Shown in pieces: positions 316-52,741 of a stretch of DNA of 64,000 bases. The stretch is from contig OZ287709.1 of assembly GCA_965649825.1 (NCBI GenBank), positions 248,001 to 312,000 of the forward strand. Direction: 5' to 3'. A program made the translations under genes and the position numbers. Each line of letters opens with the position of its first letter. Within the stretch, counting starts at the first letter, position 1. The notes under the pieces were generated by a model. It was not told the origin of the DNA and did not search any database. It saw only the letters and a list, made by a program, of their open reading frames with translations. The DNA is from Penicillus capitatus (Eukaryota; Plantae; Chlorophyta).

Positions 316-2049
316 ATGTGGCGCGTTCGGGCAGCAGTAGCCGTGGCATTTTTGGGTCCGTTTAATTCGGGTAGAAACCCCAGCATTGGCACCATCTTCC
401 CGATCGAGGCGTTTCTATGTGCGTAGCTGTGGCCCTTGTCCTCGTCAACACAATGCTAACGCAGTTATCCGAAGACTTGAGATTCGACAAGAATAGTGGC
501 GGTGCTGTGGGGACTGCTGCGCTTTACGTCGGTGGCCTGGCCGGCGGTCTTAGCGCTGTGCACTTCGAGAAAGCCAGCGGTACATTCATGCAGCTGTGGA
601 CGGGTATCCTATTTTCGGTCGGGAATACCCTCGCGGCGTTCGCCACCGAACAGAAGGTCTGTTGGAGTGGACTGCACGGATGTAGCCCAAGCATGTTACT
701 GGGCGGACGCCTACTAACGGGGTTCGCCTGCGGTCTTGTGCTCGCTCTTACTCCAAAGTACGCCGACTTACCTACAGCATTACAACAACGATATTCATGT
801 GGTAGGTATCCGGCTGAAGTTTCGTCAACCGACGAAAGAAACGCGGTTAAATCATACTCGCAGGTGTACTGACTGTTATACGCGTTTCGCTTACACACAT
901 CTTGTGACAGGTATCATTCGCCACTGGATCTCTTTATGGGCTGCTCCTTGGCCTGCCATACGAATTTGATGTTCGATTTTGCATCGGCTGTGAGTGGTGG
1001 AGGATCATGTTCCTCATGGCATCACTACCGTCAACGTTACAGGTAAGCATCGACTCCTCTACTTCCCTCCTGAAGAAAGCCATAAGCAGTGTTTATTGAC
1101 GCTGGCGGCGTTCCCTCTGTTTCAACACTCGCATGCTTCGACTGAAGCGACCGAGACAAGTGTATCCTCTATACAGATTGAATCTGGGTACACGACTGAT
1201 CAAACGAATGAATCTGGACTCAACTTGAAGGATGGACTCATCGATAAAAATACCACAACGAATGAAGTGAGCACTGGAATGTCACTTAACTCACTATGTA
1301 TGCCCCCCAAGTACATAACCCAGACCGCCGAGCAAAGCCTACCAACTCCCTCTCTGTTCGCCTGTCTATTCGACAGGAAATACCTTCGATCTATCATATT
1401 GGGAATCGGCTTCCCAGTTCTTTGCCAACTCACTGGAGTCAGTGTCTTTGCTTCCTACTCGACAACAATCTTGCAGAATACCGGAATGGAGAGAGCAATT
1501 CTGGGCAGTGTCACTTGCGGATCGGCGGCCGTCATTGGCAGTATCGTCTCCGTTTTTCTTTTTCACAGATTTAGCAGAAAAGCGATGGCCTGTGTAAGTT
1601 TCTCTGCTATGGCAATGTGCTGCCTGGCTCTCTCACTTTCAGATTTAGCGCCAACAATAATCTCCGGACTTTTCTCCGTTATCTGCATTTTTGGATTTGT
1701 TTTTTTCTATGCATCAGTGTGTAGTACTTTACACACGGGTCTTCCGACAGAAATCTTGCCTCCTGAAGTTGCAAGTGCTGCCTTTGAATTGGGTCGGTTT
1801 CTTTCATGGCTGTGTGCTTTTATCATCGTCCTCATTTCACCTGCCATTCTCGACGCTGCTGGGGCACTTTGGCTGTACCTTGCATTTTTTGCTTCGTGTT
1901 TCGTTTCTTTACTCTTTTGGAAATGCGCCATCGAACCGAAGGAACAAGAATTGAAGGATATCGTGGAGGAGCTCATGAACATGCCTGATACCTCTGTGGC
2001 TCAGCGATTCAATGCTTCGAGTATCACGTTCGGCGTTCATAAGCCTTGA
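316..2049 (+). CDS. Sugar porter (MFS/GLUT-like, pGlcT-related) transporter, copy A, 5 exons
   Basis: ATG 316 (MWRVRAAVAVAFLGPFNS). GT-AG introns about 371-426, 758-805, 864-910 and 1043-1089. Hydrophobic helices, YPAEVS after TM4, CQLTG in TM7, TEILP and IEPKE motifs. Intron positions match copies B and C. Confidence 0.85.
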
Positions 2050-3830: not shown

Positions 3831-4185
3831 TTAGCGCGACGTTGTCCTTTCCCCGCTGTAACCCATCCAACTCGGCGCAGGCTCGCCAGACACAGCCGGG
3901 TCAACTCTGATGGGACGTCCCTCCTCTGTGTCCGGCGCAGGAATCGAACCCCCGCGGTCGTACTTCTCGAACTGGTCCAACTGCACCATCCGCTTCGGGT
4001 CGATCCCCGCGATCGTGAAGTTGCCGACCCCATCGTATGCCCACCGGTGACGACTTCGATGACGACTCTCCTCGACGACTTGCTCCACCGACCATCCTAC
4101 ACCCGTGACGACTTACTCCACCGTCCATCCAACACCCGTGACGATTCTCCCGACTGTCCACTCTGCACCTACGCCGACTTCGACG
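3831..4185 (-). pseudogene. GC3-rich fragment of an unidentified gene (3' end)
   Basis: Frame ...AYDGVGNFTIAGIDPKRMVQLDQFEKYDRGGSIP...TTSR* has nearly all codons ending in G/C. Upstream are VVTGVGWxVEQ-like repeats with an in-frame TAA at 4113-4115 and a probable frameshift. No start or N-terminus found. Confidence 0.4.
4074..4172. repeat. 33-bp tandem repeat, 2 good copies plus 1 degenerate
   Basis: 4074-4106 versus 4107-4139 match at 30 of 33 nt; 4140-4172 is degenerate. Confidence 0.85.
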
Positions 4186-4716
4186 ACGATCTTCAAAGAT
4201 GCCGGACTGAAAGACGCCGTCATCAGTAGTATCATATACGCGTTTGGTGATGTCTTGGTCAGCGGCATTTCTGTTGTGCTTTTCGACAGATATGGCCGTG
4301 TCTCAATGGCCTTCGTCAGTTTCTCGGGCATGGCTCTCTCCTACCTGGCGCTTGCCTTCTCGCAGTTTGCCAGTTCTGCCATCTCTGGTTATCTGTCTGT
4401 TGTTTTTGTCTTCACTTTTGTTGTGTCTTTCGGATCCGGATGCGGGGCATTGAATATGTGCTACGCCCCTGAGGTCGTCCCTCCACAGATCGCCAGTACA
4501 GTTATCGGCATGGGGCAGTCTTTATCCATCTTCATCGCCTTCATTGAAGTCCTCTTGTTCCCCACCGTTTGCGACACCATCGGCCCCTTCGCATCTTTTC
4601 AGATCTTATTCGTATTTTGCATCGTCTCCCTTATCTTCTTAAAGATCTTCATGGTGGAGACCAAAGATCGCCAACTCGACGAGATTGTGCAGAGCCTGTA
4701 TGCACATGGAGGGTAG
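4183..4716 (+). pseudogene. 5'-truncated sugar porter (TM7-end to TM12 only)
   Basis: TTIFKDAG...APEVVPPQIAS...VETKDR aligns with the C-halves of copies A-C. Homology stops abruptly at about 4183 and there is an in-frame stop at 4060 upstream. Confidence 0.75.
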
Positions 4717-10829: not shown

Positions 10830-13800
10830 ATGAGCGACTCAAACAACGGAGCCTACGGCGAGGTAAAGCATCCTAGGGAACGAACGAACATACCGTAGAG
10901 GTGAACGCAGGCGGACGGTATGGAAGACCAAGTCCAAATTCAGAAGCTTGATGTACTGGCGGCACACCAGAATCGTTTTCAAGTAAGCCAGCTCCCTGCG
11001 TTGGTACGTGCGGCTCGACGAAGCTCGACATCGTAGTTGGAGAATTTCTATGGAGCTCTGCGACGAGCGGGACAGCGACGTTCAAAGTTTACTCTCTTTC
11101 GTGGAGGGCGTCAAGGAGGTGGTCTCGCCGACGGAGAGTTCACCGTGGACGACATGTTGCTTTACTCGCCGGTAAGTACAGGGGTGTCTGTCGTTGCATG
11201 AAGTGATGGGGGTATGTTCGTTCGGTGGATAGGATCCGATTCCAACTTCTTTGCTAAAACTGAGCAACGACTACGCCAGTCGTGCAACGAAGATGTTTGT
11301 ATCGATGCTAAAGTACATGGGTTTGGGCAAAGAGTATCTCACCGATCAACAGAAGGTGGAAATTGCTCAGAAGCTGCTGCACCAAGGGCTGAAAAGACCC
11401 GAGCTGAAAGATGAGCTCTATATGCAACTCATTAAACAGACGAGGGGCAATCCGAGTCTGGATGGCAAGCTGCGTGCATGGGAGCTGTTCCATCTCGTGA
11501 CATCTACCATGCCTCCGTCCAAAGTGTGACCGCATAGTAGTGTGATCTGGATCGATATATGGCGATGATGTGACAGGAGTTTGTGGGATTGGTGACTGAG
11601 CATGTCCATCTGGCATCGCATGGCGACGTCGAAGAGCAGATCGTACGGGAGATCGCACTGCGTTCGTGGACTTCCATGAAGCGATCGCTCATCGCCGGTG
11701 CCCGAAAGACTCTCCCCGCAACAGAAGAGATCCAGTGCCTTCTTTCTGGCAAGGCGCTGACGTGCATCGTCTACTTCTTGGACGAGACTTTCGAAGCGAT
11801 CAACTGCGATTTGACAACGACGGTCCAGGAAGCTATGAAGCAATTGGCAGACATCATTAAACTACAGAACTACAGTACATTCACGCTCTTTGAGTGTCGC
11901 AAAGTTGTTGGCCCTCGAAGTACGGAAGACACCGTCGATGAGCATATCATACTGGACGATAACAAATACATTGCTGATGCACTGTTCGATATCAAGAATC
12001 CCAAAAATTCAAGAGAAGGTATCCAAAGCAAATTGCTGGTGAAGAAGAAAATGTTTAGAGAGACGGATGAATCCATTACCGAACCGCAATTTATCAATCT
12101 CTCATACATTCAGGCTCAGTATGATTATTTGCTGGGCAATTTTCCCTTCGTGCAAGAGGATACGGCCCAGCTCTGCGCTTTGCAGATTCAGGCAGAATTC
12201 GGATCGTCGATTCTGGAAGTGGAAGAGGAACTGTCAGCTGCTGTTACCAAATACATTCCCACACCCGTAAGACCACCCCACCCGTGCTTATGCCTTAAAT
12301 GCGTGTCCTTCGTAGTCTGCTGCCTCACGACCTCATGAAGAGTGGGTGCAAGACGTGAAGAGTCGATATCGCAGTTTGGATCAATTTTCGAAAGAAGAAG
12401 CCCGATTGCATTTTCTGAGAATCTTGCGCAGTTTGCCATACGGCAATTCTATTTTCTTCCCTGTCAAGAAGATGGAAGATCCAATCGGTCTCCTGCCTCA
12501 GAAACTGATTTTGGGCATCAACAGAAGGGGCGTCCATTTCTTCAAACCCTCTCCCAAAGAATACCTCCATTCTGCTGAACTTAGAGATATCATGCAGTTT
12601 GGATCCAGTAGTCAGGCTGTCTTTTTCAAGATGCGTGTATCGGGGGTACTACACATCTTTCAATTTGAGACGCGACAGGGAGAAGATATCTGTCTAGCTC
12701 TGCAGACACACATCAATGATATCATGATGAAGCGCTACTCGAAATCCAAAGCCGCCGCCACTGCTGTACCGGCAACAGACAGCCAACCACAGGCACAGGC
12801 GACGGAATCGCATTCGGCAGCCGATGCCCAGGCCGCCGGCGCCCGTACCGGTCCAAAACACGAAAAGCATGCCAATCAGATGCAGAAGACATTGGAAGAG
12901 AAGGCCAGAATGATCGACGAGCTGCAGAAGCAGGAAGAGAAACTGCGCCAAGAGAAAGATCGCGTGGCTGAGGAGCTGATCGAGGCACGGGAGAAACTCA
13001 AGGTCGAGGAAGATCAGCTGAGGGAGTTCAAAGAGACAAAGCGGAAACTCGAGAGCGATCGATCAGGACTCTTGGCTCAGATCGACGAGGCAAAGGCTGC
13101 CGTAAAGGAGGCCGAAGCCAACAAAGCCGCCGCCGTTGACGCCGCCCGAGAAGCTGTCGATGCCAAGATGGTCAAAGAGCTGCAGAAACAGATCCACAGT
13201 GCGACAGACGAGCTGCAGAAAGTTCAGGATCGTGTACAGGAGCTCGAGAAGGAGTACAAAGACTCGACCAAAGAGAAAGAGCTCATGGAGAAGAAGATGC
13301 AGAGGCTAGAGAAATCAAGGGACAACGAAACGCGTGAGCTGCGGGACAAACTCGAAACGGCCAAGGCATCCGTGGGCGATCAGCTGCAGGAGAAGGAGGT
13401 CCGAATTGAAGAGCTCATGAAGGAGCTATCGAAGACAACGGAGCTGTACAATGCAAACAAGGTGGAGCTGGAACAGATCCGGACAGATCTGAACGAACTG
13501 GATGACTTGAGGGAAATGAAACAGGACGTCGAGCGAAAAGAGAAGCTTCAGAAAAAAATCATCGCCGATCAGGCCAAGCGCCTGGACGAACTGGAAAAGC
13601 TTCACAAAGAAGAGCAGATGTTGCGCAAGAAGTACCTCAGTATGATGGAAGACATGCAAGGCAAAGTCCGTGTCTACGTGCGATTGGGCCAAGAGGCGCC
13701 GTCCGAAGGCATCGTCGAAGTGGTCGACGAATATACCTTGGCGAAGAAACAGGCCGATCGCTTTGCCGTGCGTGAGGAGTTCGCTTTTGATCAGGCCTAC

Positions 13801-14839
13801 GGTCCAGAACAGTCGAATGAACAGGTAAAGAGTGAGAAGTGTGAGAATGTATGAGCGTTGTTGTGGGTTTAGGCGTTCGAGACGATAAAGCCTGTCACAT
13901 CACGTTGTGTTGAGGGATACAATGTGAGCGTTGTGGGCCACGGTATGGTCGGAAGCGGCAAATCCTTTACGATGTTTGGCGTCCCTGGCAACGATGGCGT
14001 CATTACCCGTGCCATCGACGATGTTTTCGCTACTGCTAAGAAACGCTCAAAGAAATGGGACTTTGTTCTCAAAGCGTCTATTCTTGAGCTGTATGGAGAT
14101 GAGCTAACAGATCTGCTCAATCCTGGCGCGAAGAAACTGTCGGTGCGTCGAGATGTCAAAGGCCTGGTGCATGTGGTGAATGCCTCGTTTACTGTCCTCT
14201 CCTCCACCGATCTGCTCAAAGAGTGTATCACCAAGGCATTCAAGAAGCGAGATGAGTTGGGACACGATGCTTCCGATTCGAATCTGTTCGTCACGGTGAC
14301 GGTGGAATGCAGCAACAAAGAGACGGGTGTGATCAACAACGGTCGTCTGGTGTTTTCGGATCTGGTCGGATGCAATAAGGGCAATGCGAGTATGGATGCC
14401 CTTGAGAATGTCATCAAGGCATTGGAGGCAGAACAGCAAGAGATTCCTTACACGGCAAGCGGTCTCACAAGACTCTTTAACGATTGTCTGGGTGGCAATT
14501 CCAAGACCCTCGTCCTGGTCCACGTCAAAGCGGATGCCGATCTGTGGGAAGAGACGAAAAAGGTAAGGCGCATATCTATCGAACCATCCATCGTATGGAA
14601 ATCGATGCCTGTGTGGCTGGCTGCCGTTCTAGACGATGGAATTGGGGTTGGCGATTCGCAAAGTGAAGAACGATATCGAGAAGCACGAGATCAACAAAGA
14701 TATCCTGAAGCTGAAGAGACAGCTCGATGCTCTGAAAGAGCGTGCTGGGATACCGAAGGAACTGTTGGATGCAGTGGACATGGTGGAGATCACAGATCAA
14801 AAAGCAGCGCCGTCAGATACTGCCCAGGCCGCCAGTTAA
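10830..14839 (+). CDS. KCBP: Kinesin-like calmodulin-binding protein (MyTH4-FERM-coiled coil-kinesin-14) with degenerate motor
   Basis: DPIPTSLLKL and DELYMQLIKQTRGNP (MyTH4); LPYGNSIFFPVKKMEDPIGLLP...HIFQFETRQGEDICLALQTHINDIMM (FERM); long coiled coil; C-terminal motor with GMVGSGKS and LGGNSKT; CaM-helix-like LKLKRQLDALKERAG. First-exon assignment is tentative. Confidence 0.92.
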
Positions 14840-15067: not shown

Positions 15068-16732
15068 TTACATTCCGTTCGATTGGATGGGATTGGTTTT
15101 TGAGTGCGATGACAGGGAATAATCATCCGAACGGGTGATATCGCTTTCATGAGTCGCCTGACGCGTCGTGCCGTTAAATAAACTCTTGAGCGTCGCCGTC
15201 AGTCCACCCGTCGATCGATTTCTCTTTGCAGAATGATCGTGATCAACAGACATGGCAGTGGATGTCGCCAGATGACTGTCTTCTGAAGAGTATCGTGCTG
15301 TGCTTTCGACCACAGGCATGGCGGCGGATCGAGTGGCAGGACTCTCAAATGTACCGGCCGCTTTGTGCGGGACACGGTTAACGGAATGCAGCGTTTCCAT
15401 ATCGTCTCGCACCGTCTCTGAGGCTTTGGAAGGAGAGGCAACATCGCCGCCGCCACTGCCTTGGACATCCCGAGAAGACGATTTCTCGTAGAACAGAATG
15501 TAACCACGATCCGTGATCTTGGAGAACTGCGCCGGCGATCCGAAGGTCCGTTCCACCCAGGCATCGGGAATCGCCTCGACGTGATCATCGTCAAACAGCA
15601 GCCAATGTCCATGACTCTTCACCAACGACACATAATGACCTAAATGCAAATCATTAAACGCATTTAATGAGTACGGATCTTCTCACCATGATTCAGACTG
15701 CTGCCGGAATGGACGACGACAGCAAAGAGATTGTAGACGTCATCGGAGGACGGTGCATCGTCTGTTGTGTTACAGAGTTTCAGTTCCATGGGGAAGACGA
15801 CGCGATACATCAGTTTTCGCATCCTCTCATCGAAACGCATGAGGTGACAGATGAGAATCTGCGGTAGCTGTTTGATCTTATTCTGCCTGTAAGCCTCCTG
15901 ATGACACTGACAGACTTCACAAAAGTATTTATCTCTCTTGTCCAACACAGCTTTGGCACTAGAACAGCGTCGCAAGAGTGAGAATGATGTGACAGGCGGC
16001 GGAATGAAAAGACAGAAGTGTGACCTCGACTGACCTGTATCGCTTCAGACAGCTGGTCAAGGAACAGTTGTGCTCGATGGCCAGCTGCAAATCCATGAAG
16101 ACCTCTTCTCGACTCGTCACGGTTTCGCAGCACAGACACTTCGTCTCGTGGACCAATTTGCCTTCGAAGATTTCTTGAACCCATGTCGGTCGAGGCGGTC
16201 CAGACGAAGAGGCACTCGGCTGCTTTTGTTTCTGCTCCTTCTCCAGAATATCGGATATCCGCAGAAAGAGATGATTGAGAAATTCGTGGGCGTCCTGTGC
16301 AAGACAGAGACAGATGTGTATGGGCTGCCTCGAGGGACATGGAATGGACAGACCTGATGCATGAAGCCACAGAACTGATCGTTATCTCTCTTTAATCTCT
16401 GTACGAATTTCTTGGGCGATATCACTCCAGATTTTTTGCGATGTGAGTGAATCTAGCGATGGGACACACATATCGTTTGGCCGTTGGATGTGGATGTAAT
16501 CCCACACCTGTACAAAGAGATCTGCCAGACAGGTGTAGATCGTTTCTTCTGCCTCTCTGTCCATCGACTCGGCAAAAGCGAGGACCCCTTCGCGAAACGG
16601 CGTGCAGAAGTAGAGCGCTTGGAGCACGGAATTGCAGTAACAGGTGTTTCCAAAGTTCTCGAGTCCGAAGTAGCGTTCCTCATCGGGGAGAGATGTGAGA
16701 CTTTGGCCCAGTCGACTGGAAGTCATGCCCAT
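15068..16732 (-). CDS. Ubiquitin carboxyl-terminal hydrolase, USP12/46 (UBP3/4) type
   Basis: MG start, [21 protein letters not shown] Cys box, CETVTSREE and FCEVC zinc ribbon, [18 protein letters not shown] His box, and a Ser/Thr-rich C-terminal extension. Confidence 0.93.
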
Positions 16733-17047
16733 GGTCGAAAAGAAACAGGGGAAGCAGTACTTCGCCAGACGCGCGCCACTCGACTGAGAACTGTTCTTTG
16801 AGGTGGTAGGTGTAGTGTTGGAATATCTCTTTCGAGATATGGGTGCTTCTAAGTTTATTACGACTGGACGGCGGCCACGACGTCGGTCGCGTGTACGTCT
16901 CTGCGAGTGGCTCTTCTTTGAGTCGACCACGACACAAACGTTTTCTGAACTGTCGCTGGTATTCGTTGAAAAACGTCTCTCTCGAAATTCCGCAATATTG
17001 GCCGTGGTGAAGTGGGTTTAACAGTCGTGTCGCATCGCCCTTCGAGA

Positions 17048-18445
17048 ATGCAGCGGACGCGACGGCCAGGGATGTATGATTTGATTGTGGTCGGAGCTGG
17101 ACTCCATGCACTCACCCTACTCTGTGCTCTCTACGAAGAGCGACCCATGCATACAAACCTTATCGATGCCGCCGGAGGCGTCACGCGCAGCAAACAGAGT
17201 GAGAGGACAATGAGAGCTGAGCTTAAGAGACGGCGAAGAGGGAGAAGGGATGAGAGAGAGGAGAGGGTGTTCGTGGTGGATCGATGGGGTCGATGGTTAG
17301 AGAACTGGAAGCGACAGTTCGACGTGCTCGGCATCGACGCCCTGCGTTCCAACGCTTCGTTGCATCCGGACGCTTTTGATCCAGAGATGCTCTTCGAGTA
17401 TGCTCGTATGCAAGGATATTCGATGGGACAGGCGTTTGAAGAGATCACTCATGTGCCAAGAGGGAAACAGTTCGTCGGTCCATTCCAGGTGCCGAAAACG
17501 GCATTCTTCAATGCGTTCTGTGAATCGCTCATCGAGAGCTTCGGTCTGCGAGACATCGTGCAGCAGGGTGATGTGACATCTCTAGAGGGTGTCACATCAG
17601 AAGGCGGCGCGTGTAAGAAAGGTGTGAGAGTGTGGATGAAGGATGGGACGTCAGTGATGGGACGTCGAGTGGTCGTCTCCATCGGACACTCAAATCGTTC
17701 CAATGTGCCAGACTGGGTCGATCGTGACCTCCGCCTTCCAGCTCAGACACTCGTCCACGTATGGGACTTGGTACATCAAGATCTATCACACTTAGATCTA
17801 AAGAGTGAGAGAGTGGCTGTGGTGGGCGGTGGACTGACAGCAGTGCAGCTGATGCAACTGGCCATGCGTTGCGGCTGTCGTCGTGTGTATCTCATCAGCC
17901 GACGGCCACTAACCGTCCGTCCTTTCGACAGCGACCTGACCTGGAGTGGCCGACTGCGCCATGCAAAGCTTCAGAAGTTCTGGAGTGAAGAAGACATGGA
18001 GAAACGCATGGATCTGATCCGAGAGGCTCGAAGGGGAGGGACCGTCACATCATCTGCCTACAGAACCCTGACGGAAAGGATGGCAGATGAGACGTGTACG
18101 CTCCTAGAGGGTATCGAGATCTGGGATGCGGAATGGAGGGGGTCATCGTTCCACGTGGAGCTCTCCAACCACGAATCTGTTGAGGTCGAGCGCATCTGGT
18201 TGGCAACTGGAAGCGCCATCGATGTGACGCAGGAGCCTCTCTTTGCCAGAATCCTGCAAGATTACCCTGTCCGCGTGTGTCATGGGTATCCGGTGCTGGA
18301 TGCTGATCTCAGATGGCATCCAGATCTGGATGTGTATTTCATGGGAGCCTATGCCAGTCTTGCCCTCGGGCCAGATGGCGTCAATCTTGCCGGGGCGCGA
18401 CGTGGCGCCTTTCGTCTGAGAAAAGAGTTCAGCGACAGGCCCTGA
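17048..18445 (+). CDS. FAD/NAD(P)-binding oxidoreductase (N-hydroxylating monooxygenase-like fold), intronless
   Basis: DLIVVGAGLH (FAD GxG motif), VAVVGGGLTA (NAD(P)H motif), IWLATG and LALGPDGVNLAGAR. The start could be 17048 or 17072. Confidence 0.8.
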   Translation: MQRTRRPGMYDLIVVGAGLHALTLLCALYEERPMHTNLIDAAGGVTRSKQSERTMRAELKRRRRGRRDEREERVFVVDRWGRWLENWKRQFDVLGIDALRSNASLHPDAFDPEMLFEYARMQGYSMGQAFEEITHVPRGKQFVGPFQVPKTAFFNAFCESLIESFGLRDIVQQGDVTSLEGVTSEGGACKKGVRVWMKDGTSVMGRRVVVSIGHSNRSNVPDWVDRDLRLPAQTLVHVWDLVHQDLSHLDLKSERVAVVGGGLTAVQLMQLAMRCGCRRVYLISRRPLTVRPFDSDLTWSGRLRHAKLQKFWSEEDMEKRMDLIREARRGGTVTSSAYRTLTERMADETCTLLEGIEIWDAEWRGSSFHVELSNHESVEVERIWLATGSAIDVTQEPLFARILQDYPVRVCHGYPVLDADLRWHPDLDVYFMGAYASLALGPDGVNLAGARRGAFRLRKEFSDRP

Positions 18446-19695
18446 TGTCTTCTATCTTAATAATGGGGCTTTATATGAGGCAACCCCTTTGCGTCCGAAT
18501 CAACACTTGCACGTTTCGCGCATAGCGTCGTCGGTGCCACCATGATGTCGACAACGTTGCCGAAGGGGCATGAGTAGATGCCCTCTTCGCCCTAAGCGCC
18601 ATGATACATCAGCCGATGCACCGGCGCCATATTTCCTCTCCCCTTCCGTCTGCACAATGCCCATCGCTGTCACCATGTATATCAGAGATCGCAGGCGTGA
18701 GTGTGACGGCAAGGACGTTGCTCATCGAAACGAAGCCTTCAAAAGAGATTTCTCAAAGGTACCCCCACAAAGAAAGCTTATCGGACTTGACATCGCGGAG
18801 GACAACATTCTTGGAACGGCATTGTGCGACGGCTCTCAGGATATCTTTGACGATTTGTGCCGCATCTACACACCACGCACTCCACAATCATCTCGTCATC
18901 GACGGTTACCTTGTTTAGGAGAGCTCTGTTTGATTCGACCCAAGAATGATACACTTGTGTAGCGCTCCATCACCAAATGGACGCGTTGCTCTGTCTCGTA
19001 GGCGCCATAGAGGTAGGCAATGTTGAGAGATGGGCCCAGTTTTGTCAAAGTATCCACTTGGTGATCTACACGTCATGCAAAGGGCCCCGTCGTAAACGTC
19101 CACAAGAGTTCCTTCTGCATGGATCTCACTGCAAAACCAAACTGAAAATACCGTTGTCGATCCACACGGGCAGAACTGCATCACCTCTCGCCCGTGGGCC
19201 GATGTGTGGCTTCATGAACAGAAGATAAACTGCCATAGTCCAATAGCGCTCTCATCTCACACTCGAAAGCTCTCCAAGAATCTGACTCAGCATGTGTGCC
19301 CCGAGATTAGCAATCGGTGACTGACGCTTCGCAGTGATGTTACCAAAACTGCGATGCGTTCGCGATGGAGTGCGGTGTCGTTGAGTGGCAGCGCGACCAC
19401 ATAACATGGGCACAGTCTTCAACATGCACCATTCATTGGGCATGCAACGTATAGAGAAGATAGACGTGCTGTCAAATCAAGCTCGCGACTTCATGTTGAA
19501 TCATCGGCGGAGAGTTGTTAGATTCCTCGCTGTGTGTTTGTCTGGATGGCTGTCCTGTTCCGGAACGCAGCATGGACTCAGATACTTAAGGAACCTTTTG
19601 CTATGAACTTTGCTTAGTGTAACAAGTTTAGCTGATAGCATAGCAGTCGCGACCAACAAAACTCGTTATTTTACGAATCGACGACGCATCGCAAT

Positions 19696-21055
19696 ATGCC
19701 GACCGACGAGAAGGATGAGTCGACCGAGGAGCAGCCGGCCGACGAGGAGGATGAGTTGGCTGAAGAGCAGCCAAGCCGCAGGGAGAGGGTGAGGGTTCCG
19801 TATGGATACTGAACATCGAGTGAGATGCTTAATATTCTTTAGCTGGTCGGTAGCATTGGCAAAACAACGACAGATGCTGTCAAAGGAATCTCGTCTACTG
19901 CCAGTTATTTCGGCGGCGCAATGCTGAAGGGAGCCGACAGATTCATAAGGCGAAACAAAGCTCGCGAAGAGCCAAAAACCGTCGACGATAAGACGAAGAA
20001 ACGGTCGATCATCAACATCTCAAAACCACTCTTCTCGGCACTTGCTTTACCGGCCTTGGAGGAGGACGAACCGACCGAAAAGCAGTCAGCCACCGAAGAG
20101 GATGAGCTGTGCGAGGAGAAGTCGACCCCCGTAGAGGATGAGCTGCCAGATGAGCTGGCCAGCGAGGAGGATGAGCCGACTGAGGAGCAGCCGACCCGCA
20201 CGGATAGGGTGAGATTTCTGCATCGATGTGACCATCGAATGAGATGCTGAGATTCTCTTTCAGCTGGTCGAAGGCATCGAAAAGGCAACGACAGGTGCCG
20301 TCAAAAGAATCTCGACGACTGCCAATTACGTCGGTGACGCAATGATGAGAGGAGCAGAGCGATTCAAGAGGCAAAGCCAAGCATGCGAAGAGCCAAAACC
20401 CATCAGCGAAGGCGCCAAGAGACGGTCGATCATCAACATTTCAGAACGACTGTGTTCGACACGCACTTTGTGGCTGTTCAGTGTGCAGAGGTTAAAGGAA
20501 ACGACAAAGATGGCTTCAGAATTGACGACCCGAGCAGTCAAAACGGTCTCAGTAGTTAGCGCCGCCTCCAGTGTAGCCGTCGACGCTGTCTCTGTCGTTG
20601 CATCCAAGGCAGCAGACACCATCGTCATCGAAGGCATGTCTGATGCATTGCTCAACTCCGAATGCGCAAGTGATTTGGGCAATGCAATGGCTGACATGGC
20701 ACAAAAGAAAAGGAGCGGAGTGACGCGTGTGGCCGCAGCCGTCTACACTTCGGTAGCTAAGATTTCCGAGGGAGTGACAGAGGCAGCAAATACAGTTTCC
20801 AAGAAAACGGCGGATGCAGCCGAAGAAGTCATCACACACAAGTCGCTTCAGTTCAAAAATACTTGAGCGTCACCGAATCCTGTTCCCACTCTTAGGTATG
20901 GCACCGAGGCGTTTCAGGTGGCCAAGGATTGCGTGGAAGCTGTGGGTCATACGACCAACGTCGTCGTCAAAACTTCGACGCTTGGCATGTAAGCCATTGT
21001 GAAACCGAGGTCATTAAAATTGCCATTGGGGGCAAATGATCAAGCCAAAGAATAG
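19696..21055 (+). pseudogene. Senescence/spartin-associated domain gene (ERD7-like) with internal duplication and a late in-frame TAA
   Basis: VITHKYGTEAFQVAKDCVEAVGH matches the senescence-domain C-terminal HKYG motif. The acidic exon, intron and next exon are duplicated. TAA at 20990-20992 interrupts LGM*AIVK. Confidence 0.6.
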
Positions 21056-21860: not shown

Positions 21861-23641
21861 TCATGCGGCAGGCGACGACCGAGCCTTCTCGAATCCCCTC
21901 TTGGCCAACAGAGCCACGCCGTACGAAGCCTCTCCTGCACCAGGGGGAACAAGACTCGAGTGCGTGGACACGGACCGAGAGACAGACCGAAGGGAGCGGC
22001 TTCGACAGGCACGCCCAGAGATCGCCTGCGCATCTCCGTCCACTTCAGATTCGCCGCTCCGCCTCCGGCCGTCCACACCCGTCTGACCGCCCCTGCCCCG
22101 AGCGTCTGCAGCCGACGATAGCACTCAGCTTCGATGGACGCCATTCCTTCCAGCATGCCTGCACCGATGTCGATCAGCGCAGCACCCACTCGATGACCTG
22201 CCTGCCTTGGAGAAAGAGAGCGTCGTCTGCCGGGCGTGGTTCGAGACGCGGTTGGTACAGCGGATCGTTGAACGGGAATCTCTCTCCTGGCGACGCGAGC
22301 GGATAGTAGTTCAACTGCGACGGCGCTTCGTGCTGCATCCTGTCGGTGAGTGTGCGGATCTCCTCGTCCGTAAAGTACTGCCTCAGCACAGCCCCTCCCG
22401 TGTTCGACGCTCCGCCCACCAGCCACATGTCGCCCAGTCGATGCGAGTAGACGCCGTGCTCGACGGCATCAACGCGTTTGCTGCTCAGCATCTTGATGGC
22501 GAGCGTCGATCCCAGGCTGGTGACAGCCTCTCCCTCTTCCTGCGCGCCGGATGCCAGAAATGCGGCGATGCTGTCCGTGGTTCCGGCGCAGACGACACAG
22601 TCGGTGTGCAGACAGTACTTCTGCCGAACCGCGTCCCGAACGCGTCCCGCGACCGTGCCCGGTGGCACGATCGCCGAAGGCAGAAGCGGAAAGAACTCCT
22701 AGCTCCGCAGGAGAATGCGTCAGAAGGAGAAGTCGTTGCAAAACGGTGTGCGACCTGAGACTGAAGCCAGGACGGGTATGCCGCTGTCTCCGGATCGTAT
22801 CCCAGTTTCAACGCGTTGGTGTCGTCCGACTGGCGGCAGTTTCCTGCTCGAAACCCGTCGTCGAAACCGGCAAGGCGCGCAGAGGGAGAGAGACACCGTG
22901 CATGAGATAGGACAGCCAGTCTGCTTGATGCATCACTCTGGGACGCCTTCCCCGTTCTCGATGCCGCTGCCAGGTGTTGTCCAGGTGCCACTGGAGCACC
23001 TTGCACAGCGTCGAGGTGGAGGCCCTTCCCGGATGGCGCTCTGGTGCAATGGCCTGTCTCGAATGCGGGACCAGTTCAAGTCAACACGCGTCGACTTGTC
23101 CGGTACCCTGGCGCGGTCGACCGCCGCTGAGCTCTGTGATGCGTTGTACCATTGAGGCGGCTCCAGAGACTCTCCTGTCCCCTCGTCGACAAGCATGGTG
23201 GTAGAGGATGTCCCGTCAAAGGCCAACGACACAATCCGCGTCGTCAGCTCTTCCGGTATGCGTCCGAACAGCTCATCCAATGCCCTGCAGTCAATTTCGC
23301 GCACGCGACATGCACTATCCTGGTCGCGGAATCGCGCATACCGCTGCCATGCAACATCCCACTCTTCCTCCGGTCGACGGTCGTACGGCACTCTCCCTTC
23401 GTGCAAGGCAGACGAACTCCCTGAGTCGCAGGCTCTTCACATCAACAGTCCGTCGACGATCGGACAGGTTCTTGCCGTCGATCACCGTCGCCCTCGCTCC
23501 GGACGTGCCGAAATCGATTCCCAGGTAGACCGGTCCTTCGACGTACGCCGCCATCGCGTCTCCCATCCGCGGGACGCGTGCAGGGCCTCTCCTCCTCGTC
23601 GAACTCTGGGGAAAGGCACGCGGCTGCAGGAGGATCGCCAT
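21861..23641 (-). CDS. FGGY carbohydrate kinase, XK-1/D-ribulose kinase type, with transit-peptide-like N-terminus
   Basis: YLGIDFGTSGAR, AFDGTSST, QADWL, AGTTDSIAAFLASG, VTSLGSTLAIK, GGASNTGGAVL, AGGGAAN and EASYGVALL. The start (23641) is tentative. Confidence 0.9.
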
Positions 23642-23704
23642 CCGCCAGATGAGCAGAACAATAATCGCCTCATTCCCGTCGAGATTTCCCTGCGGCACTT
23701 TTCC

Positions 23705-25465
23705 ATGCGCGCACGCAGCGGACGTCGCGAATCCTGGTCCAAAAGGGGCGTCGGCGTCGCCATCTGTTCGTTCGTCACGCTCTCCTTCTTTCTATCGTGG
23801 TGGGAGCTCTCCTACCGCGATACCGTTTCCCGCGGAGGGCGTTGGCGTCCAAATATCCAAATCAATGTCGTCGACAAGGACGGTATCGTCCTGCGCGGCG
23901 GCGCGGGATTTCAGGGCGCCTCGCGACACGGCAATCTTGCCGGACGGAGCCCGAGGAGAGGCGTCGTGGACGAGGAAGACGTACCAGTCTCAGACGGGGG
24001 AATCCGGGAGACGCCTCCCGATGCGCCCTATCGTCTGATCCAGCTGCCGAAGGCAGTCAATGCAGCCGCCGCTGCGTGCGAAGAGCAGCCAGCGGATTGC
24101 CGACGGTTCAACGACTTCGTCCAGAGCATGATTCAGGGAGCCACATCGGAAGACCGAGCCCGCCTGTACATCGTTCCGGTCGATCCTCTGGCCATGATCC
24201 GCGAGGTGAATCCCAATCTCTACGCGAAACTCCTGCGGACGCTGATCGACGAGCTCAACTCCTCGAGGCCGTACATCCGATTCAAAGGATCCGACCACGT
24301 CTTCGTGTGCCTGGCGGCGGCTTGCCAATCGTTCGGGGAGGAACTTGCCGAGAAGCTGGCAGACGATCGCGGAACGAGGGCAATCTTCGCGGGCGTCGAT
24401 CTCGACGTCGAGCGTCTGACGTGGCCGTGTCCGCTCAGAACGCTGAACATCGATCGGCAAGCGGTCCGGGATCTCGGTTCCCTGCCCGGAAAGATCACGA
24501 GAGAGGCTGCTTTCATGATCGACCGCCACAACCGCTGGGTGTGCGCGGACGAGTTCCACGCCGCCAACCACTTCGGCAGCTACGAGTCCTCGATGGACGT
24601 CGGCGGCATCTACATGGACGAGTGAGTGGGACGTTCGCAGGGTGGGAGGGCGGAGCGAGCAGAGTGCGTGCGGATGCTGTTTAGGTACCAGTTCACGATG
24701 TGCCTCAATCCCAAGAGCGGCAGCACGATGATGATGTTTCTGCTCAGAAGAATGAAGCACAGGAAGGACTGGAGGTCGAGAAAGAACGGCCTTCCCCACA
24801 ATCCTGAGCTTTCCGGACTGGACTACGTGTCGAGCATCAAGAGGAAGGACCCCAATGTCGTCAAGGCAGTGCTCTCTGAACCGGACGGCGTCGCGTCTGA
24901 GACGACTGTTGTCTAGGCGATCTACGACAGTCCCTTCATTCTGAAGGCCGTTCTGGTGCGTCACCCGATCCCGCGTCTGCTCTCGGCCTACCTCGACAAG
25001 ATCGAGGTGCTGAAGGAGTACAACAGAGTGGAGGGCTTGGAGGCATACGTGAAGGCGCGCGGAGTGCCGTCCTTCGCGGAGTTCGTCGAGTACCTCATCA
25101 CCACCTTTCCCGATCCAGACGTTCTGGAGGAGCACTTCCAGATCCAGTCCGCCAGGTGCGGAGCACGCTACCACAGGTTCGACTTCGTGGGACATCTCAG
25201 CGATGTCGGCACGGAGTTCAAGGAGTTCGCACAGTCCTTGAAGTTCTACGACGAGTACGTTGCGACCGGATGGGGAGAGGACGAGAAACAGCAGTTCGGT
25301 GTGCGCTCCTACCAAGTGGACCAACGCTACGCAGGAATGCAGATCTGGAAGTACTACACGGACGAGCTGATGACGAAAGTCTACCGGTACTACAAAGAGG
25401 ATTTCGATCGATTCGGATTCACCCTGGACGAGATTCTGGTCACGAAACCGTCGACACGTCATTGA
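23705..25465 (+). CDS. Type II membrane protein: exostosin(GT47)-like segment fused to a carbohydrate sulfotransferase (Sulfotransfer_2)
   Basis: N-terminal TM GVGVAICSFVTLSFFLSWW; ARLYIVP...PYIRFKGSDHVFV (GT47-like); CLNPKSGST (5'-PSB), VRHPIPRLLSAY (3'-PB), HFQIQ, FDFVGHL and YYKEDFDRFGF. Introns about 24623-24683 and 24867-24916. Confidence 0.85.
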
Positions 25466-27800
25466 AGCAAAGGAAAGCGCAAACCAGCTTGACGAACACT
25501 GTCTATCTAGCCTTTTCTTGTGGATCCCGTGAAGGAACGCAGAGGGACAGATAAGTGAATGGTTAGATAAGAAACCTGCGTAATGGTTCGCTCGTTCGGT
25601 TCGGGTGCTTAAGATGTCGAGAGTCCGTTTGGCTGTTTAGGCGGACAGGGGTGAGTACGAGTCGTGGTTTTCGAAACGGACAGCACTGACAGCACGGCTG
25701 TATCTTACGTAAGATGCAGATTTTACGCGTAAGGCAATTAACTTCCTAGACATTTTAAACGCTGCGCCAAGGCAGATTCACAGCCTTTCCTTTTTGACTT
25801 TTGCCGAAGAACATGCCAGGTCGACTAGACATCGCCGTGGCCCTTCTGGGCCCTTTCAACTTTGGTAAGCACGGAAGATCTCTTGTTGTTATCTAGAGTC
25901 AAGCATTTCGTCGACAGGTTTGGCTATGTCCGTCATGAATACGATGCTGGAAGCAATCTCAGAAGACTTAGGATTCGAAGAGAATGTTGGCGGTGCCGTG
26001 GCTTCTGCCGCCCTTTACGCCGGTGCAGTTATAGGCGGCTTCTTCGTCGGTCCCTTCGAGAAGTGCTGCGGACGATTCGCACAGTTCTGGATCGCGTTTT
26101 TGTTTCTACTGGCGAGTCTTCTCTGTGGCCTGACGAACGAACACAAGTTATGTTGGGGTGAATCGTTTGAGGGATGCGTGCCTTACATGCTGCTTTCTGG
26201 GCGCGTGATGGCCGGCTTCGCGTTTGGGTTTTCCATCGTCATCTCGCCAAAGTAGACCGCGAAGAGACTTAAAGCTTGTCGGCAGCATGTGTTTAGGTTC
26301 TTGGTCGCCGCGTCGACGCCAGCGCAACGTGGCTGTCTTATGGCGGTCGTGCAGGTCTGCCACCCCGCCGAATCTTTTGTACTCTTGTGGAATGCGTGCT
26401 GCAGGTCGTTGTCGCCACGAGTCAGTTTCTTGGACTGATTATCGGCCTCCCGTACGAATTCGACGACTCGTTTGAGCTCGGCTATGGTTGGTGGAGAATC
26501 ATGTTTCTCCTCACATGTCTGCCAGCCATTCTCCAAGTCCGGTCTCGTTCATCACCTTAACTGCATCTCATTGGTTCTGCAGGGCTCACTGGCACTCCTG
26601 ACGCTGTACCGTCCATCAACGGTCGGTAAAGAGCGCGGCCCGATGTGCGAGTCCGTTGTCGTTCAGATGGCAGAGTCCGGAGACAAAAGTCAAGACACGG
26701 GTCACCGCGCTTCCACGTCGGCCAGCGAAACGCATCCAGACGACAAAGTAGACGATTCAGAGATGACAGGTGGCGGAAAGGCTACTCAGCCACATCCCCA
26801 ACTGGACAAGAGCTCTCGTCCGAACCTCGATTCCATGCAGCAATTCCGATTCATCTTCGCAAAACGATATCGCCCGTGTGTCATCCTCGCCATCGGCATC
26901 CCCGTCTTCTGTCAAATGAGTGGCGTCAATGTGTTGGTCTCGTACTCGACCAAACTCTTCGAAGATGCTGGAATGGATGCAGCTATCGTTGGCACCACGA
27001 TCTTCGGCCTGGCAAACATCATTGGAAGCTTCATCAGCATTTGCACCTATGAGAAGTTCGGTCGGATCAAAACTACTCGCGTAAGCGTAACGATTTTGAT
27101 TCTCTGTTGCTTACTGATTGCCTTAATCGACTTGGCATCTTCGACGGTTTCTGGCATTGTGTCGACTGTGTGTGTCACTGTGTTCATCATGGCGTTCGCC
27201 TCCTCCTGTGGACCCATGAATCACACTTATGCTGCCGAAGTCGTCCCTCCCGAGATCGCATCTGTTGTTCTGGGATTGGGCCAGTCACTGTCGCTGATCG
27301 TCAATCTTATTCTAGTCCTTGTATTTCCTGGCATTCTCGACGCCATTGGCGTGCTGCTTTCTTTCTTGTTTTTCTGTGTTGTTTGTGTGTGTTTCTTATT
27401 CTTTCTCAAGCTGTATATGATCGAAACAAAGGGAAAAGATCCCGAAGAGATCTGGAAAGAATCGACAAGATGCTAAATGCAAATGTCGTGTTTACTGAAT
27501 GAGAAAAGTATGTTTTTTCATATTAACACAACAGAATCCAAATAAAACGGAGCTGCTGTAAGCAGAGCCGACAAAATGCATGAGACGTTTTCTATGTTGA
27601 GTTTTAATAAGGCATCAATCTGTAGTTCTTACGTTTTTATTGACCCATGAACCAGAAAAAACTCTGCATCAACTGCAGAGTCTTTCGATAATTTTGGTAT
27701 TGGTTTATTCCTTTCGTCTGCAACATGTTGCTGGAATCCAGTTTTTGCAGTATCTGGAATTCCAGCATTAGATTTCGTTAAAATCCGTTAAATCTGTATC
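25066..27800. repeat. Arm 1 of an inverted segmental duplication (partner about 44770-47513)
   Basis: The sulfotransferase 3' half, the intergenic spacer, the whole sugar porter and the downstream motif (tggaattccagcactag/cattag) recur in reverse complement. Confidence 0.9.
25813..27476 (+). CDS. Sugar porter transporter, copy B
   Basis: MPGRLDIAVALLGPFNF start, same intron layout as copy A, CQMSGVN, AAEVVP and IETKGK. Confidence 0.85.
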
Positions 27801-31880: not shown

Positions 31881-32177
31881 GTCACATCATGAGTTTAAAT
31901 AGTGATACGTACACGACTGTTGTAGCACTTACTTCAGACGATAACATCTTTCTAAGACGAACACGACGAACACGTTTTCTATTTGCGGACGTTTAACAAA
32001 GTCGAAAAGTGTTAAAGGAAGAATAATAATCCGTCGGTCCTAGATTCACCAATACCCTAATTGTAACCGTTATTGATTTTCCAATTGTCCATTCTGGCTG
32101 CCTCTGCTAGAATCAGGCAGACATCTTTGTCATTAGCCTGACATCATTGAATGGCGCGAAGTGCATGGATCGATGTT

Positions 32178-34289
32178 CTACAGCCACGGGGAATTCTCCA
32201 GCGGCATCATGACGGTTTTGACCTACAGTTTTCCACAGAGATTCTGCGGGAGATGACAAACCATAGCTTATGACCTCTGTGAGCTCTCGAAGACCATACT
32301 CTGCGTTCTCGCGTCCTATTCCACTCATTTTGTAACCGCCAAGTGGGGTCGCATTGTCAAAGATTAAATAGCAATTCGCCCAGAACATACCTACAGCACC
32401 TGGACATCCTCTGTGCCACGATACCGTTCGCTCACCTGCTCGGATCGAACGAGAGAGTTTGTTGATGGTATCGACGTTATTGGACAGAACGCTAGCTGCC
32501 AATCCATATGTCGTGTCGTTGGCTCTACGGATGACCTGAAACGCAGATGTTAAGCACGCATCTCCAGTGAGGGCTCCTTCGCATACCTCATCCTCGTCTT
32601 CGAACCTGAAGATGGATTGAACAGGACCGAAGATTTCTTCTCGAGCGATCCTCATCTCATCTTTGACATTGGCGAAGATCGTCTGCTCGATGTAGTAACC
32701 CTTTGATCCAAGACGTTTCCCTCCACATATTAGCTCCGCCCCTAAAGGCAACAGCATTCGTATGGGAAACGATCAGCAGGTGTACTACTACCTTGGTTTA
32801 TTCCGCTGTCGATGCAGTCAAGGATCTTGGCAAACTGTCGATCGTCGATTTGCGGCCCTTGATCGACAGGGGTAAAGGGATCTCCCACCACTCTGTCGTC
32901 ATTCCTGTGAGATGGATCGGAGAAAGGGTAATCTGTACTTGGTTTGCACCAGATCGTGGGCTCGTTCCACAAACGCATCATAGATCTCGGCATGAACAAA
33001 CAATCGACTGCCAGCAACGCATACCTGACCATGGTTCGCAAACGCCGCTCTGTGTGCCAACTTTACTGCCTATGAAGACGCTGACGGACACAACAAGGGG
33101 TGAGAGGAGAGACCGCTTCCAAGTCTGTGTCTGGGAAAACGATAAGAGGCGATTTTCCTCCGAGTTCCAGAGAGACGCGCTTCAGATTGCCACTCGCATT
33201 GCGGAGGATCTCTTGTCCGACTTCGGTGCTCCCAGTGAAGTGTATCTTATCAACATCCATGTGTGACACGAGTGCCGCTCCAGCGACGCCATCTCCAGTC
33301 ACGACGTTAAAGACGCCATCCGGAATGCCGGCCTCCAGTGCGAACTCTGCCAGTCGGATCGCGACCAACGGCGTCTGCTCGGCAGGTTTGAGCACGAGTG
33401 TGTTGCCGGCGGCCATTGCCATGACGGAACGGCACGGCATAAGAAATGGCCCATTCCAGGGACTAATCTGAAACAAACGAAGCCCCATCCTTAGGAACAT
33501 GAGATGGAAGGGTTCGAACGTGTCCAACGACTCCGATGGGCTCGTGCAAAGTATAAGCGAAGAAACTGCCATCTACTGGAATGGTTTCACCGTGGACCTT
33601 GTCTGCCCAACTACACACATGTCTCTGTGTTAAATATCGAAGCACGTTGACTAGAGTGATTGGTGTACTTTGCACAGTAGCGAATGTATTCGATGCCGGA
33701 CGGAATCTCGCGTTCATACGTCGATCTTAGAGTCTTGCCGTTTTCCTGTTCGAGGCAGAGAAGAGCAAAAAGGCACAGGACAGGATGAGGCACCTTACCA
33801 GTGTCGCTAAGAATGCGAGTTCATCAACATGTTGGTCGAGAACGTCTGCAAATTTCCGTAGCATGCGTCCTCTCTCCTAAAGAGTGGGTGGGATGCATCA
33901 GTGAACATCAGCTGAAAGGACGCGTCCGGCGCTTTACCCGTCCAGAGAGTCGAGGCCATGGTCCTTCTTCGAAGGCTCTGCGTGCGGCCTTTACTGCACG
34001 GTCGATATCTTCGGCGTCTCCCTCGGCGACTTCGATGATGGACTGCTCTGTTCGAGGATCGACGACGGCAAATGTCTTCCCGGTGGCAGCGTCCTCCAAT
34101 TGGCCGTCAATCACCAGCTGCCGTCCAAGATCCCGTGAGCATAAAAAGATCTTTGCAACGTGCACCTTCGGTTTAACATTCCGCAGTATGTGAGGGATGT
34201 CTGGTGTTCCATACGGAATCGTCGGACTAAAAGCCAAGACTCAGTCCATCAAAACGGTATGCTTTGCAAACATACGCCGCAGTCGCCAT
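32178..34289 (-). CDS. Aldehyde dehydrogenase family 2-type, copy 1 (no transit peptide, divergent pocket)
   Basis: MATAAPTIP start across an intron; [34 protein letters not shown] (catalytic Cys), EEIFGPV and C-terminal PLENSPWL. Confidence 0.92.

Positions 34290-50877: not shown

Positions 50878-52741
<1,864 letters not shown>

Follow-up and report, generated by a model that had tools for sequence, protein, structure and literature searches.

The 64,000-nucleotide stretch of the Penicillus capitatus genome that we analysed (contig OZ287709.1, positions 248,001 to 312,000, forward strand; hereafter the window) carries, at 10920-14839 on the + strand, a gene whose product is best explained as a conserved, non-catalytic KCBP (kinesin-14VI). 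We call it pseudo-KCBP; it would occupy the cargo and the tracks of KCBPs through its tail and act as a passive tether, brake or regulator, a reading to which we give a probability of about 0.7. In plants and green algae without cytoplasmic dynein, minus-end transport of organelles falls mainly to KCBP-type kinesin-14s; in Bryopsis, these carry chloroplasts along a cell that exceeds 10 cm in length. Pseudo-KCBP retains its tail, stalk, neck, fold, P-loop and regulatory helix under purifying selection, and it appears, from comparison with its homologues, to have arisen by duplication before the living Bryopsidales diverged. The loss of motility, and the role as a tether, brake or partner, are what we infer from the sequence.

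The gene was assembled from GT-AG introns of 48-70 nucleotides into seven exons (10920-10982, 11037-11171, 11233-11523, 11577-12266, 12316-13824, 13873-14562 and 14633-14839, + strand) that form a closed frame ending in a TAA stop at 14837-14839. A preliminary description, made from the letters of this DNA alone, had reported a gene free of stops and frameshifts with an intact MyTH4-FERM tail, and both statements hold for the complete model: the 1194-codon frame contains zero internal stops or frameshifts, its exon junctions are colinear with intron-free orthologous open reading frames (ORFs), and a Pfam search of the 1194-amino-acid product returned MyTH4 (5.9e-25), RA_2, FERM_M (5.2e-18), the FERM C-lobe and, at amino acids 864-1135, Kinesin (2.8e-49). 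The domains follow one another in the order MyTH4-FERM, stalk, kinesin-14 neck, motor and regulatory helix, as listed here.

11365-11738, + strand: MyTH4 domain (Pfam PF00784), amino acids 111-217, across intron 3.
11754-12726, + strand: RA-like and FERM regions (Pfam RA_2, FERM_M and IRS/FERM_C), amino acids 223-530, across intron 4.
12817-13596, + strand: coiled-coil stalk, amino acids 561-820, unusually conserved among the pseudo-KCBPs.
13597-13674, + strand: kinesin-14 neck KLHKEEQMLRKKYLSMMEDMQGKVRV, amino acids 821-846, modeled by AlphaFold as a helix running into beta1.
13672-14659, + strand: degenerate kinesin motor domain, amino acids 846-1135, across introns 5 and 6.
14660-14836, + strand: C-terminal regulatory region with a neck-mimic, a calmodulin (CaM)-type helix at 14690-14749 and the acidic tail ELLDAVDMVEITD.

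In the alignment, the neck reads KEEQMLRKKYLSMMEDMQGKVRV against the canonical KEEQxxRKRYFNxMEDMKGKIRV and sits directly N-terminal to the motor, and the lesions of the motor are concentrated in the 3' third of the gene. The three 3' introns of the gene (12267-12315, 13825-13872 and 14563-14632) are missing from a genomic Caulerpa-like orthologue (L002, 1306-4446), which retains just the three 5' introns, indicating a lineage-specific gain or loss of introns. An intron-free ORF of 1020 codons (L001) was considered as a spliced transcript and hence as evidence of expression, but this use was dropped because the genomic L002 also lacks introns 4-6 and L001 may equally be genomic.

The lesions were scored by HMMER alignment to the Arabidopsis and potato KCBP motor structures (3h4s, E 1.2e-53; 1sdm) and in a MAFFT alignment of 34 sequences, in which 23 KCBPs from Mesostigma to angiosperms served as the canonical reference and a position was called invariant if it was at least 95% identical among them. 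Among the 139 motor positions that are invariant in this set, 49 are retained and 90 are altered in the clade of related dead-motor proteins (the pseudo-clade, described below), a change far beyond chance. The affected and the retained elements are as follows.

13681-13692, + strand: RLGQ (amino acids 849-852) in place of the RxRP adenine-pocket motif (canonical RIRP); other clade members read RLAP, RIQP or RLGE.
13942-13965, + strand: P-loop GMVGSGKS, retained (canonical GQTGSGKT); GxxG[SC]GK[ST] is found in every Bryopsidales member with coverage there.
14131-14175, + strand: L8/beta5 segment KKLSVRRDVKGLVHV, basic and conserved (clade consensus KKLVVKKDVKGLVHVVN).
14263-14286, + strand: switch I equivalent HDASDSNL (canonical NxxSSRSHL), with ASDSN at 14269-14283 and the salt-bridge Arg replaced by Asp.
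14359-14379, + strand: switch II DLVGCNK (canonical DLAGSER), with Asp and Gly retained and Glu replaced by Asn.
14379/14380, + strand: junction of a 16-residue deletion that removes L11 and the N-terminal half of alpha4 (VKKSGSxGExLKEAQA in canonical KCBPs); all 11 clade members have a gap across these 16 alignment columns.
14443-14469, + strand: L12/alpha5 IPYTASGLT (canonical IPYRNHKLT), with the basic microtubule-contact residues gone; Arg is replaced by Thr in 11 of 11.

The preliminary description had read the P-loop and switch II exactly, coordinates included, and its RLGQ and its roughly 16 missing L11 residues are borne out by the alignments; its switch I reading, ASDSN, is also correct, the position being 14269-14283 rather than about 14268-14282. 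Switch I of the window protein lacks the leading Asn as well, and a 4-residue deletion lies just upstream of it. Across the clade the motif varies from member to member (ASDSN, ASNSH, KNASH, PSDSA, LSKTH), and the Arg position is occupied by N in four, K in three, D in two, A in one and S in one of the 11 members, and by Arg in none. Switch II follows the overall pattern DL[VAP][GA][CF][DN], with D (seven members) or N (four) at the Glu position. A further deletion, of 6-8 residues, follows RxRP. From switch II to alpha5, the segment has shrunk from 63 residues in canonical KCBPs to 47 in the pseudo-clade, its Lys and Arg residues from 7 to 2-3 (3 in the window protein), and its net charge has moved from between 0 and +2 to between -3 and -6 (-4 in the window protein). 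The replacement of the CaM-helix Trp by Leu, noted earlier, is likewise real (Leu1160, 14732-14734), although it is confined to the Caulerpa-like lineage: the helix itself is present, and the Ostreobium and Bryopsis orthologues retain the Trp.

Many canonical-invariant residues have been exchanged for new ones, among them Arg for Thr1090, Asn for His1113 and Tyr for Phe931, each in 11 of 11 clade members, and Ser for Cys1063, Ser for Cys1101, as well as Gly1048, each in 10 of 11. Because residues that are invariant in canonical KCBPs are replaced by new residues fixed in the clade, these exchanges indicate a new constraint regime rather than drift. An AlphaFold2 model of amino acids 815-1194, computed with the 34-sequence alignment as input, has a mean per-residue confidence (pLDDT) of 88.6 and a predicted TM-score (pTM) of 0.86, and contains the neck helix, a complete beta-core, an alpha4 of 14 residues and the C-terminal regulatory helix. 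The top Foldseek matches in the Protein Data Bank are KCBP motors, the best being Arabidopsis KCBP 4frz (TM 0.82/0.90, root-mean-square deviation 2.4 Å). In the model the kinesin fold is retained, and the catalytic and track-binding loops are not.

In a homologue search over 5.8 billion proteins, the window protein was colinear over its full length with more than 100 KCBPs and all of its best matches were KCBPs; orthology with the streptophyte protein KAC was not found. The closest full-length relatives are a JGI sequence (P0001, 78% identity), Caulerpa lentillifera g6280.t1 (P0002, 67%), a Caulerpa-like Logan contig (P0003, 67%), Ostreobium quekettii CAD7699890.1 (P0004, 57%) and Bryopsis sp. 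KO-2023 GMH43112.1 / BSKO_11034 (P0005, 56%), and six more motor fragments (P0121-P0126) belong to the same clade. Among siphonous green algae (Bryopsidales), these identities put the window nearer to Caulerpa than to Bryopsis. The 16-residue deletion, the loss of switch I, the change in switch II and the PYT in L12 are common to 11 of 11 clade members, Caulerpa, Ostreobium and Bryopsis included. In neighbor-joining (distance-based) trees with 100 bootstraps, built separately for the tail and the motor, these proteins are monophyletic, with bootstrap support of 97 (MyTH4-FERM) and 100 (motor). In both, they form a distinct clade within the chlorophyte KCBPs, with branches of ordinary length in the tail tree and very long ones in the motor tree.

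Ostreobium has two canonical MyTH4-FERM KCBPs (P0026 and P0091) beside its pseudo copy, and Bryopsis has at least P0067 (GMH43362.1, which is Kin14VIa) and the published Kin14VIb beside its own; the canonical copies of both carry perfect GQTGSGKT, SSRSH and DLAGSERVKKSG motifs. Because canonical KCBPs coexist with it in these two algae, the dead-motor gene appears to be an extra paralogue, as had been proposed, and one that dates back at least to the divergence of the three sampled Bryopsidales lineages. A profile of canonical stalk-neck regions found no canonical KCBP in the assembly ERZ26696514, the source of the syntenic orthologue described below; a long contig (P0177/L005) that had been a candidate for it belongs to a different assembly. 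Caulerpa lentillifera has, in addition, a second and very divergent pseudo-KCBP (P0255, g8766.t1) with GMEKTGKT, DLVGFN and the L11 deletion, whose branches are long in every domain, suggesting that the pseudo-clade duplicated again in Caulerpa.

The strength of selection could be estimated from a syntenic orthologue (L003/L004) in the ENA assembly ERZ26696514, contigs ctg303746 and ctg302572, where the order copine, GCD14, KCBP-like gene, UCH and FAD monooxygenase is shared with the window. The L003 orthologue has the same seven exons and 96.9% protein identity, so that 3.1% of the amino acids differ, whereas 26% of the aligned intron positions differ (Jukes-Cantor distance 0.33). By the Nei-Gojobori method against L003, with a synonymous divergence (dS) of about 0.4, the ratio of nonsynonymous to synonymous divergence (dN/dS) is 0.012 for the MyTH4-FERM tail, 0.038 for the stalk, 0 for the neck (zero replacements), 0.083 for the motor (bootstrap 0.044-0.129; dS 0.43) and 0.022 for the C-terminal regulatory region. 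L003 was used instead of the more distant L001 (78%) and L002 (67%), for which synonymous sites are saturated and just dN is usable. The strongest constraint is on the MyTH4-FERM tail, the stalk and the neck, and selection on the motor, though far from neutral, is relaxed three- to sevenfold relative to the remaining protein. With the same lesions in all 11 clade members, this supports the earlier proposal of a maintained gene.

The distribution of constraint is inverted relative to the canonical KCBPs of Ostreobium and Bryopsis. Between these two algae, the canonical copies are 74% identical in the motor, 67% in the tail and 38% in the stalk, whereas the pseudo copies are 37%, 79% and 65% identical, respectively, so that the motor is the least conserved domain and not the most. 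The excess of conservation in the pseudo-clade stalk (65% vs 38%; window 12817-13596) may point to a surface for specific binding or pairing.

The salt bridge between switch I Arg and switch II Glu is required for the microtubule-activated ATPase of kinesins, and L11, alpha4 and L12 form their main microtubule interface. Because both the salt bridge and the L11/alpha4/L12 contact are gone, there is very little chance that the head of pseudo-KCBP is a motor or a clamp of the rigor type; more plausibly, it is kept for a structural or regulatory purpose. With its P-loop and the switch II Asp and Gly still in place, it may yet hold nucleotide; it would have no microtubule-activated ATPase cycle and no canonical microtubule binding, and the conserved basic L8 strand pair is a possible weak secondary contact with tubulin. 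With catalysis and canonical microtubule binding presumably lost, the protein would work through its tail and stalk, MyTH4 and FERM supplying the link to cargo and tracks. In Arabidopsis KCBP, MyTH4 binds microtubules and FERM binds F-actin, independently of the motor (PMC4574192). Bryopsis KCBPs drive retrograde chloroplast transport, and FERM is the likely cargo binder in moss and Bryopsis (PMC12961179). Pseudo-KCBP would share its cargo (chloroplasts, other organelles) and its tracks with the active KCBPs. In the giant cell it would tether, brake or regulate minus-end transport passively, its remodelled head and invariant neck forming a structural or regulatory module that is possibly paired with an active KCBP chain.

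Some of the data weigh against this reading. The retention of the P-loop, of the switch II Asp and Gly and of the basic L8 leaves room for nucleotide binding and a weak microtubule contact; with Asp at the switch II Glu site in 7 of 11 members and Lys at the switch I Arg site in 3 of 11, a crippled residual ATPase is conceivable; and the evidence would fit a tether, a brake, an adaptor and a heterodimer partner alike. An unconventional motor or ATPase that is still active, with a rebuilt catalytic site and track interface, would draw on the same P-loop, found in every Bryopsidales member, on the switch II residues and on the strong purifying selection on the motor. It is nevertheless highly improbable, since switch I is unrecognisable and differs from member to member, every one of them lacks L11 and half of alpha4, RxRP is lost, and no kinesin is known to hydrolyse ATP productively when the switch I/II salt bridge is missing. 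Nothing beyond the motif loss itself speaks for a pseudogene in decay, for an artefact of assembly or annotation, or for canonical switch motifs supplied by an alternative exon, and we regard these readings as effectively refuted by the frame, the synteny, the selection and the shared lesions: seven correctly spliced exons give an open frame of 1194 codons, L003 has the identical structure at 3.1% amino-acid change despite the divergence of its introns, the motor is under purifying selection and three Bryopsidales genera have the lesions in common. An alternative exon, which the preliminary description had considered as the source of intact switch motifs, has no place in the gene, because the switch region lies within a single 690-nucleotide exon flanked by introns of 48 and 70 nucleotides, and a tblastn search found no second kinesin-coding segment in the 64 kb.

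The tether, brake or regulator reading can be sharpened: pseudo-KCBP would be the obligate heterodimer partner of a catalytic KCBP, in the manner of Kar3-Vik1/Cik1, with the dead head as a foothold or regulator. The neck is without changes relative to L003 or P0001 and close to the canonical neck, the stalk matches the canonical paralogues of the same species in length (309 vs 311 and 316 residues in Ostreobium, 307 vs 313 in Bryopsis), a pairing surface would explain the conservation of the stalk, and non-catalytic heads make Kar3 processive (PMC4338441). Against these points, pseudo-KCBP has its own full cargo-binding tail and a P-loop, unlike Vik1/Cik1, its canonical microtubule face is now acidic, so that a foothold would require a new binding surface, and its stalk is just 34-35% identical to that of the canonical paralogue of the same species; on balance we find an obligate partner rather doubtful. 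Similarly tentative is the idea that pseudo-KCBP may specifically serve the active KCBPs of giant coenocytes as their partner or brake, either as a Kar3-Cik1-like subunit that changes processivity or as a nucleotide-holding, non-hydrolysing clamp that arrests chloroplast streaming, and that a dead-head KCBP was invented at least twice, in Bryopsidales and in one lineage of Chlamydomonadales, which would have lost L11 and the switch motifs in parallel. Blue-light accumulation of chloroplasts in Bryopsis is a local slowing of microtubule-dependent streaming (PMC4853393).

The Chlamydomonadales proteins came from a profile search of 1.84 billion representatives, which returned three further dead-motor proteins, P0255 of Caulerpa among them. 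The other two, P0030 (MMETSP Transcript_37392, complete) and P0253 (KAG1674601.1, Chlamydomonas sp. UWO 241), have MyTH4-FERM/KCBP tails, lack switch I and switch II, carry an L11 deletion of about 15 residues, and have a destroyed P-loop (GARRSGAG and GQPGAGCS). Trees of the tail, FERM-C and stalk put them within Chlamydomonadales beside C. eustigma (bootstrap 74-80), and the motor tree alone joins them to the Bryopsidales clade (bootstrap 100). A single origin of all dead-motor KCBPs was set aside in view of the tail, FERM-C and stalk trees, and the motor grouping is read as long-branch attraction or convergence; in the Chlamydomonadales proteins the motor probably died a second time, independently and with parallel lesions. 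Conceivably, both groups instead share one ancient origin, and their tails were homogenised later.

Canonical KCBPs (Arabidopsis ZWICHEL, Physcomitrium KCBP, Bryopsis Kin14VIa/b) have the same architecture as pseudo-KCBP, acidic tail included, and are its best sequence and structure matches; relative to them it has lost switch I, the switch II Glu, RxRP, L11 with half of alpha4, the basic L12 and, in the lineage of the window, the CaM-helix Trp. Vik1 and Cik1 are without a P-loop or nucleotide site. The analogy to them that the preliminary description drew is loose because the window head keeps its P-loop and so does not fit their definition as motor-homology domains without a nucleotide-binding site; what stands is that they, too, are kinesin-14-associated proteins with a non-catalytic, kinesin-fold head on a coiled coil (PMC4338441, PMC3384419). 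The two cases also differ in that their origins are independent, that pseudo-KCBP has a complete cargo tail, and that Vik1/Cik1 bind microtubules tightly while the microtubule face of pseudo-KCBP is degraded. The dead Vik1/Cik1 head has a positive role in Kar3 motility (PMC4338441, PMC3384419).

Dead or non-catalytic kinesins are already known. Natural examples are KIF26A/B and Costal2/KIF7, and a 2010 study by Suetsugu and colleagues reportedly found KAC, a kinesin-14 relative of the green lineage, to be without detectable motor activity. KAC positions and anchors chloroplasts, and chlorophytes have no KAC orthologue (PMC4853393). It differs from pseudo-KCBP in that it belongs to another kinesin-14 subfamily, is without MyTH4-FERM and acts via chloroplast-actin filaments; because chlorophytes lack a KAC orthologue, the pseudo-clade would, by analogy, be its independent counterpart in the microtubule system. 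An engineered rigor KCBP (T982N) is ATPase-dead yet engages cargo and cytoskeleton, as pseudo-KCBP is predicted to do, and such hydrolysis-dead KCBP is dominant-negative in trichomes (PMC4574192). Rigor mutants and KIF26, however, have an intact microtubule interface and lock onto microtubules; because the interface of pseudo-KCBP is truncated and acidic, tight binding of its head to microtubules is unlikely.

Next to the gene, the minus strand encodes a copine, a GCD14/TRM61 methyltransferase and a ubiquitin hydrolase. In L003, a 909-amino-acid reverse-transcriptase (RVT_1) ORF at 15498-18227 (- strand) lies just downstream of the FAD-monooxygenase gene, and no ORF of that size is present in the window at about 18500-21000, which may be a difference in retroelement insertion. 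The other features are given below.

994-2049 (+ strand), 4105-4716 (+ strand), 26472-27476 (+ strand) and 45102-46136 (- strand): four ORF pieces of major facilitator superfamily sugar transporters (Sugar_tr, E 1e-24 to 1e-39), several gene copies within 64 kb.
About 22000-25500: GC content of 0.62 vs about 0.51 elsewhere, with long overlapping ORFs at 23195-24625 (+ strand) and 23990-25462 (- strand) that have no Pfam match.
32113-32757 and 50878-51606 (both - strand): exon-sized ORFs matching an aldehyde dehydrogenase and the catalytic subunit of a V/A-type ATPase, respectively, ordinary housekeeping genes.
58600-61629, + strand: ORF of 1009 amino acids in which a Na+/H+ exchanger membrane domain is joined to a cyclic-nucleotide-binding domain.

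In the literature that we searched, no published description of a dead-motor KCBP clade was found. The Bryopsis genome paper counts 34 kinesins, and its Table S6 names three KIN14-6 genes (GMH44105.1, GMH42877.1 and GMH43362.1). The pseudo-KCBP GMH43112.1 is absent from that list, from the text of the genome paper and from the texts of two RNA interference (RNAi) papers, and therefore appears to be an overlooked 35th kinesin-family gene. Lying outside the published 34, it was not covered by the RNAi screen from which Kin14VIa/b and Kin14VIc emerged as chloroplast motors. It is a component of an experimentally tractable system, in which RNAi, gliding and single-molecule assays exist for its paralogues. 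The clade as a whole offers a natural experiment in what stays useful in a kinesin head after the loss of catalysis: the P-loop, the neck, L8 and the fold were kept, and switch I, switch II, L11 and L12 were discarded. A KCBP conserved with a full tail and a dead head would imply that organelle transport in these algae has a built-in non-motor regulator, tether or partner.

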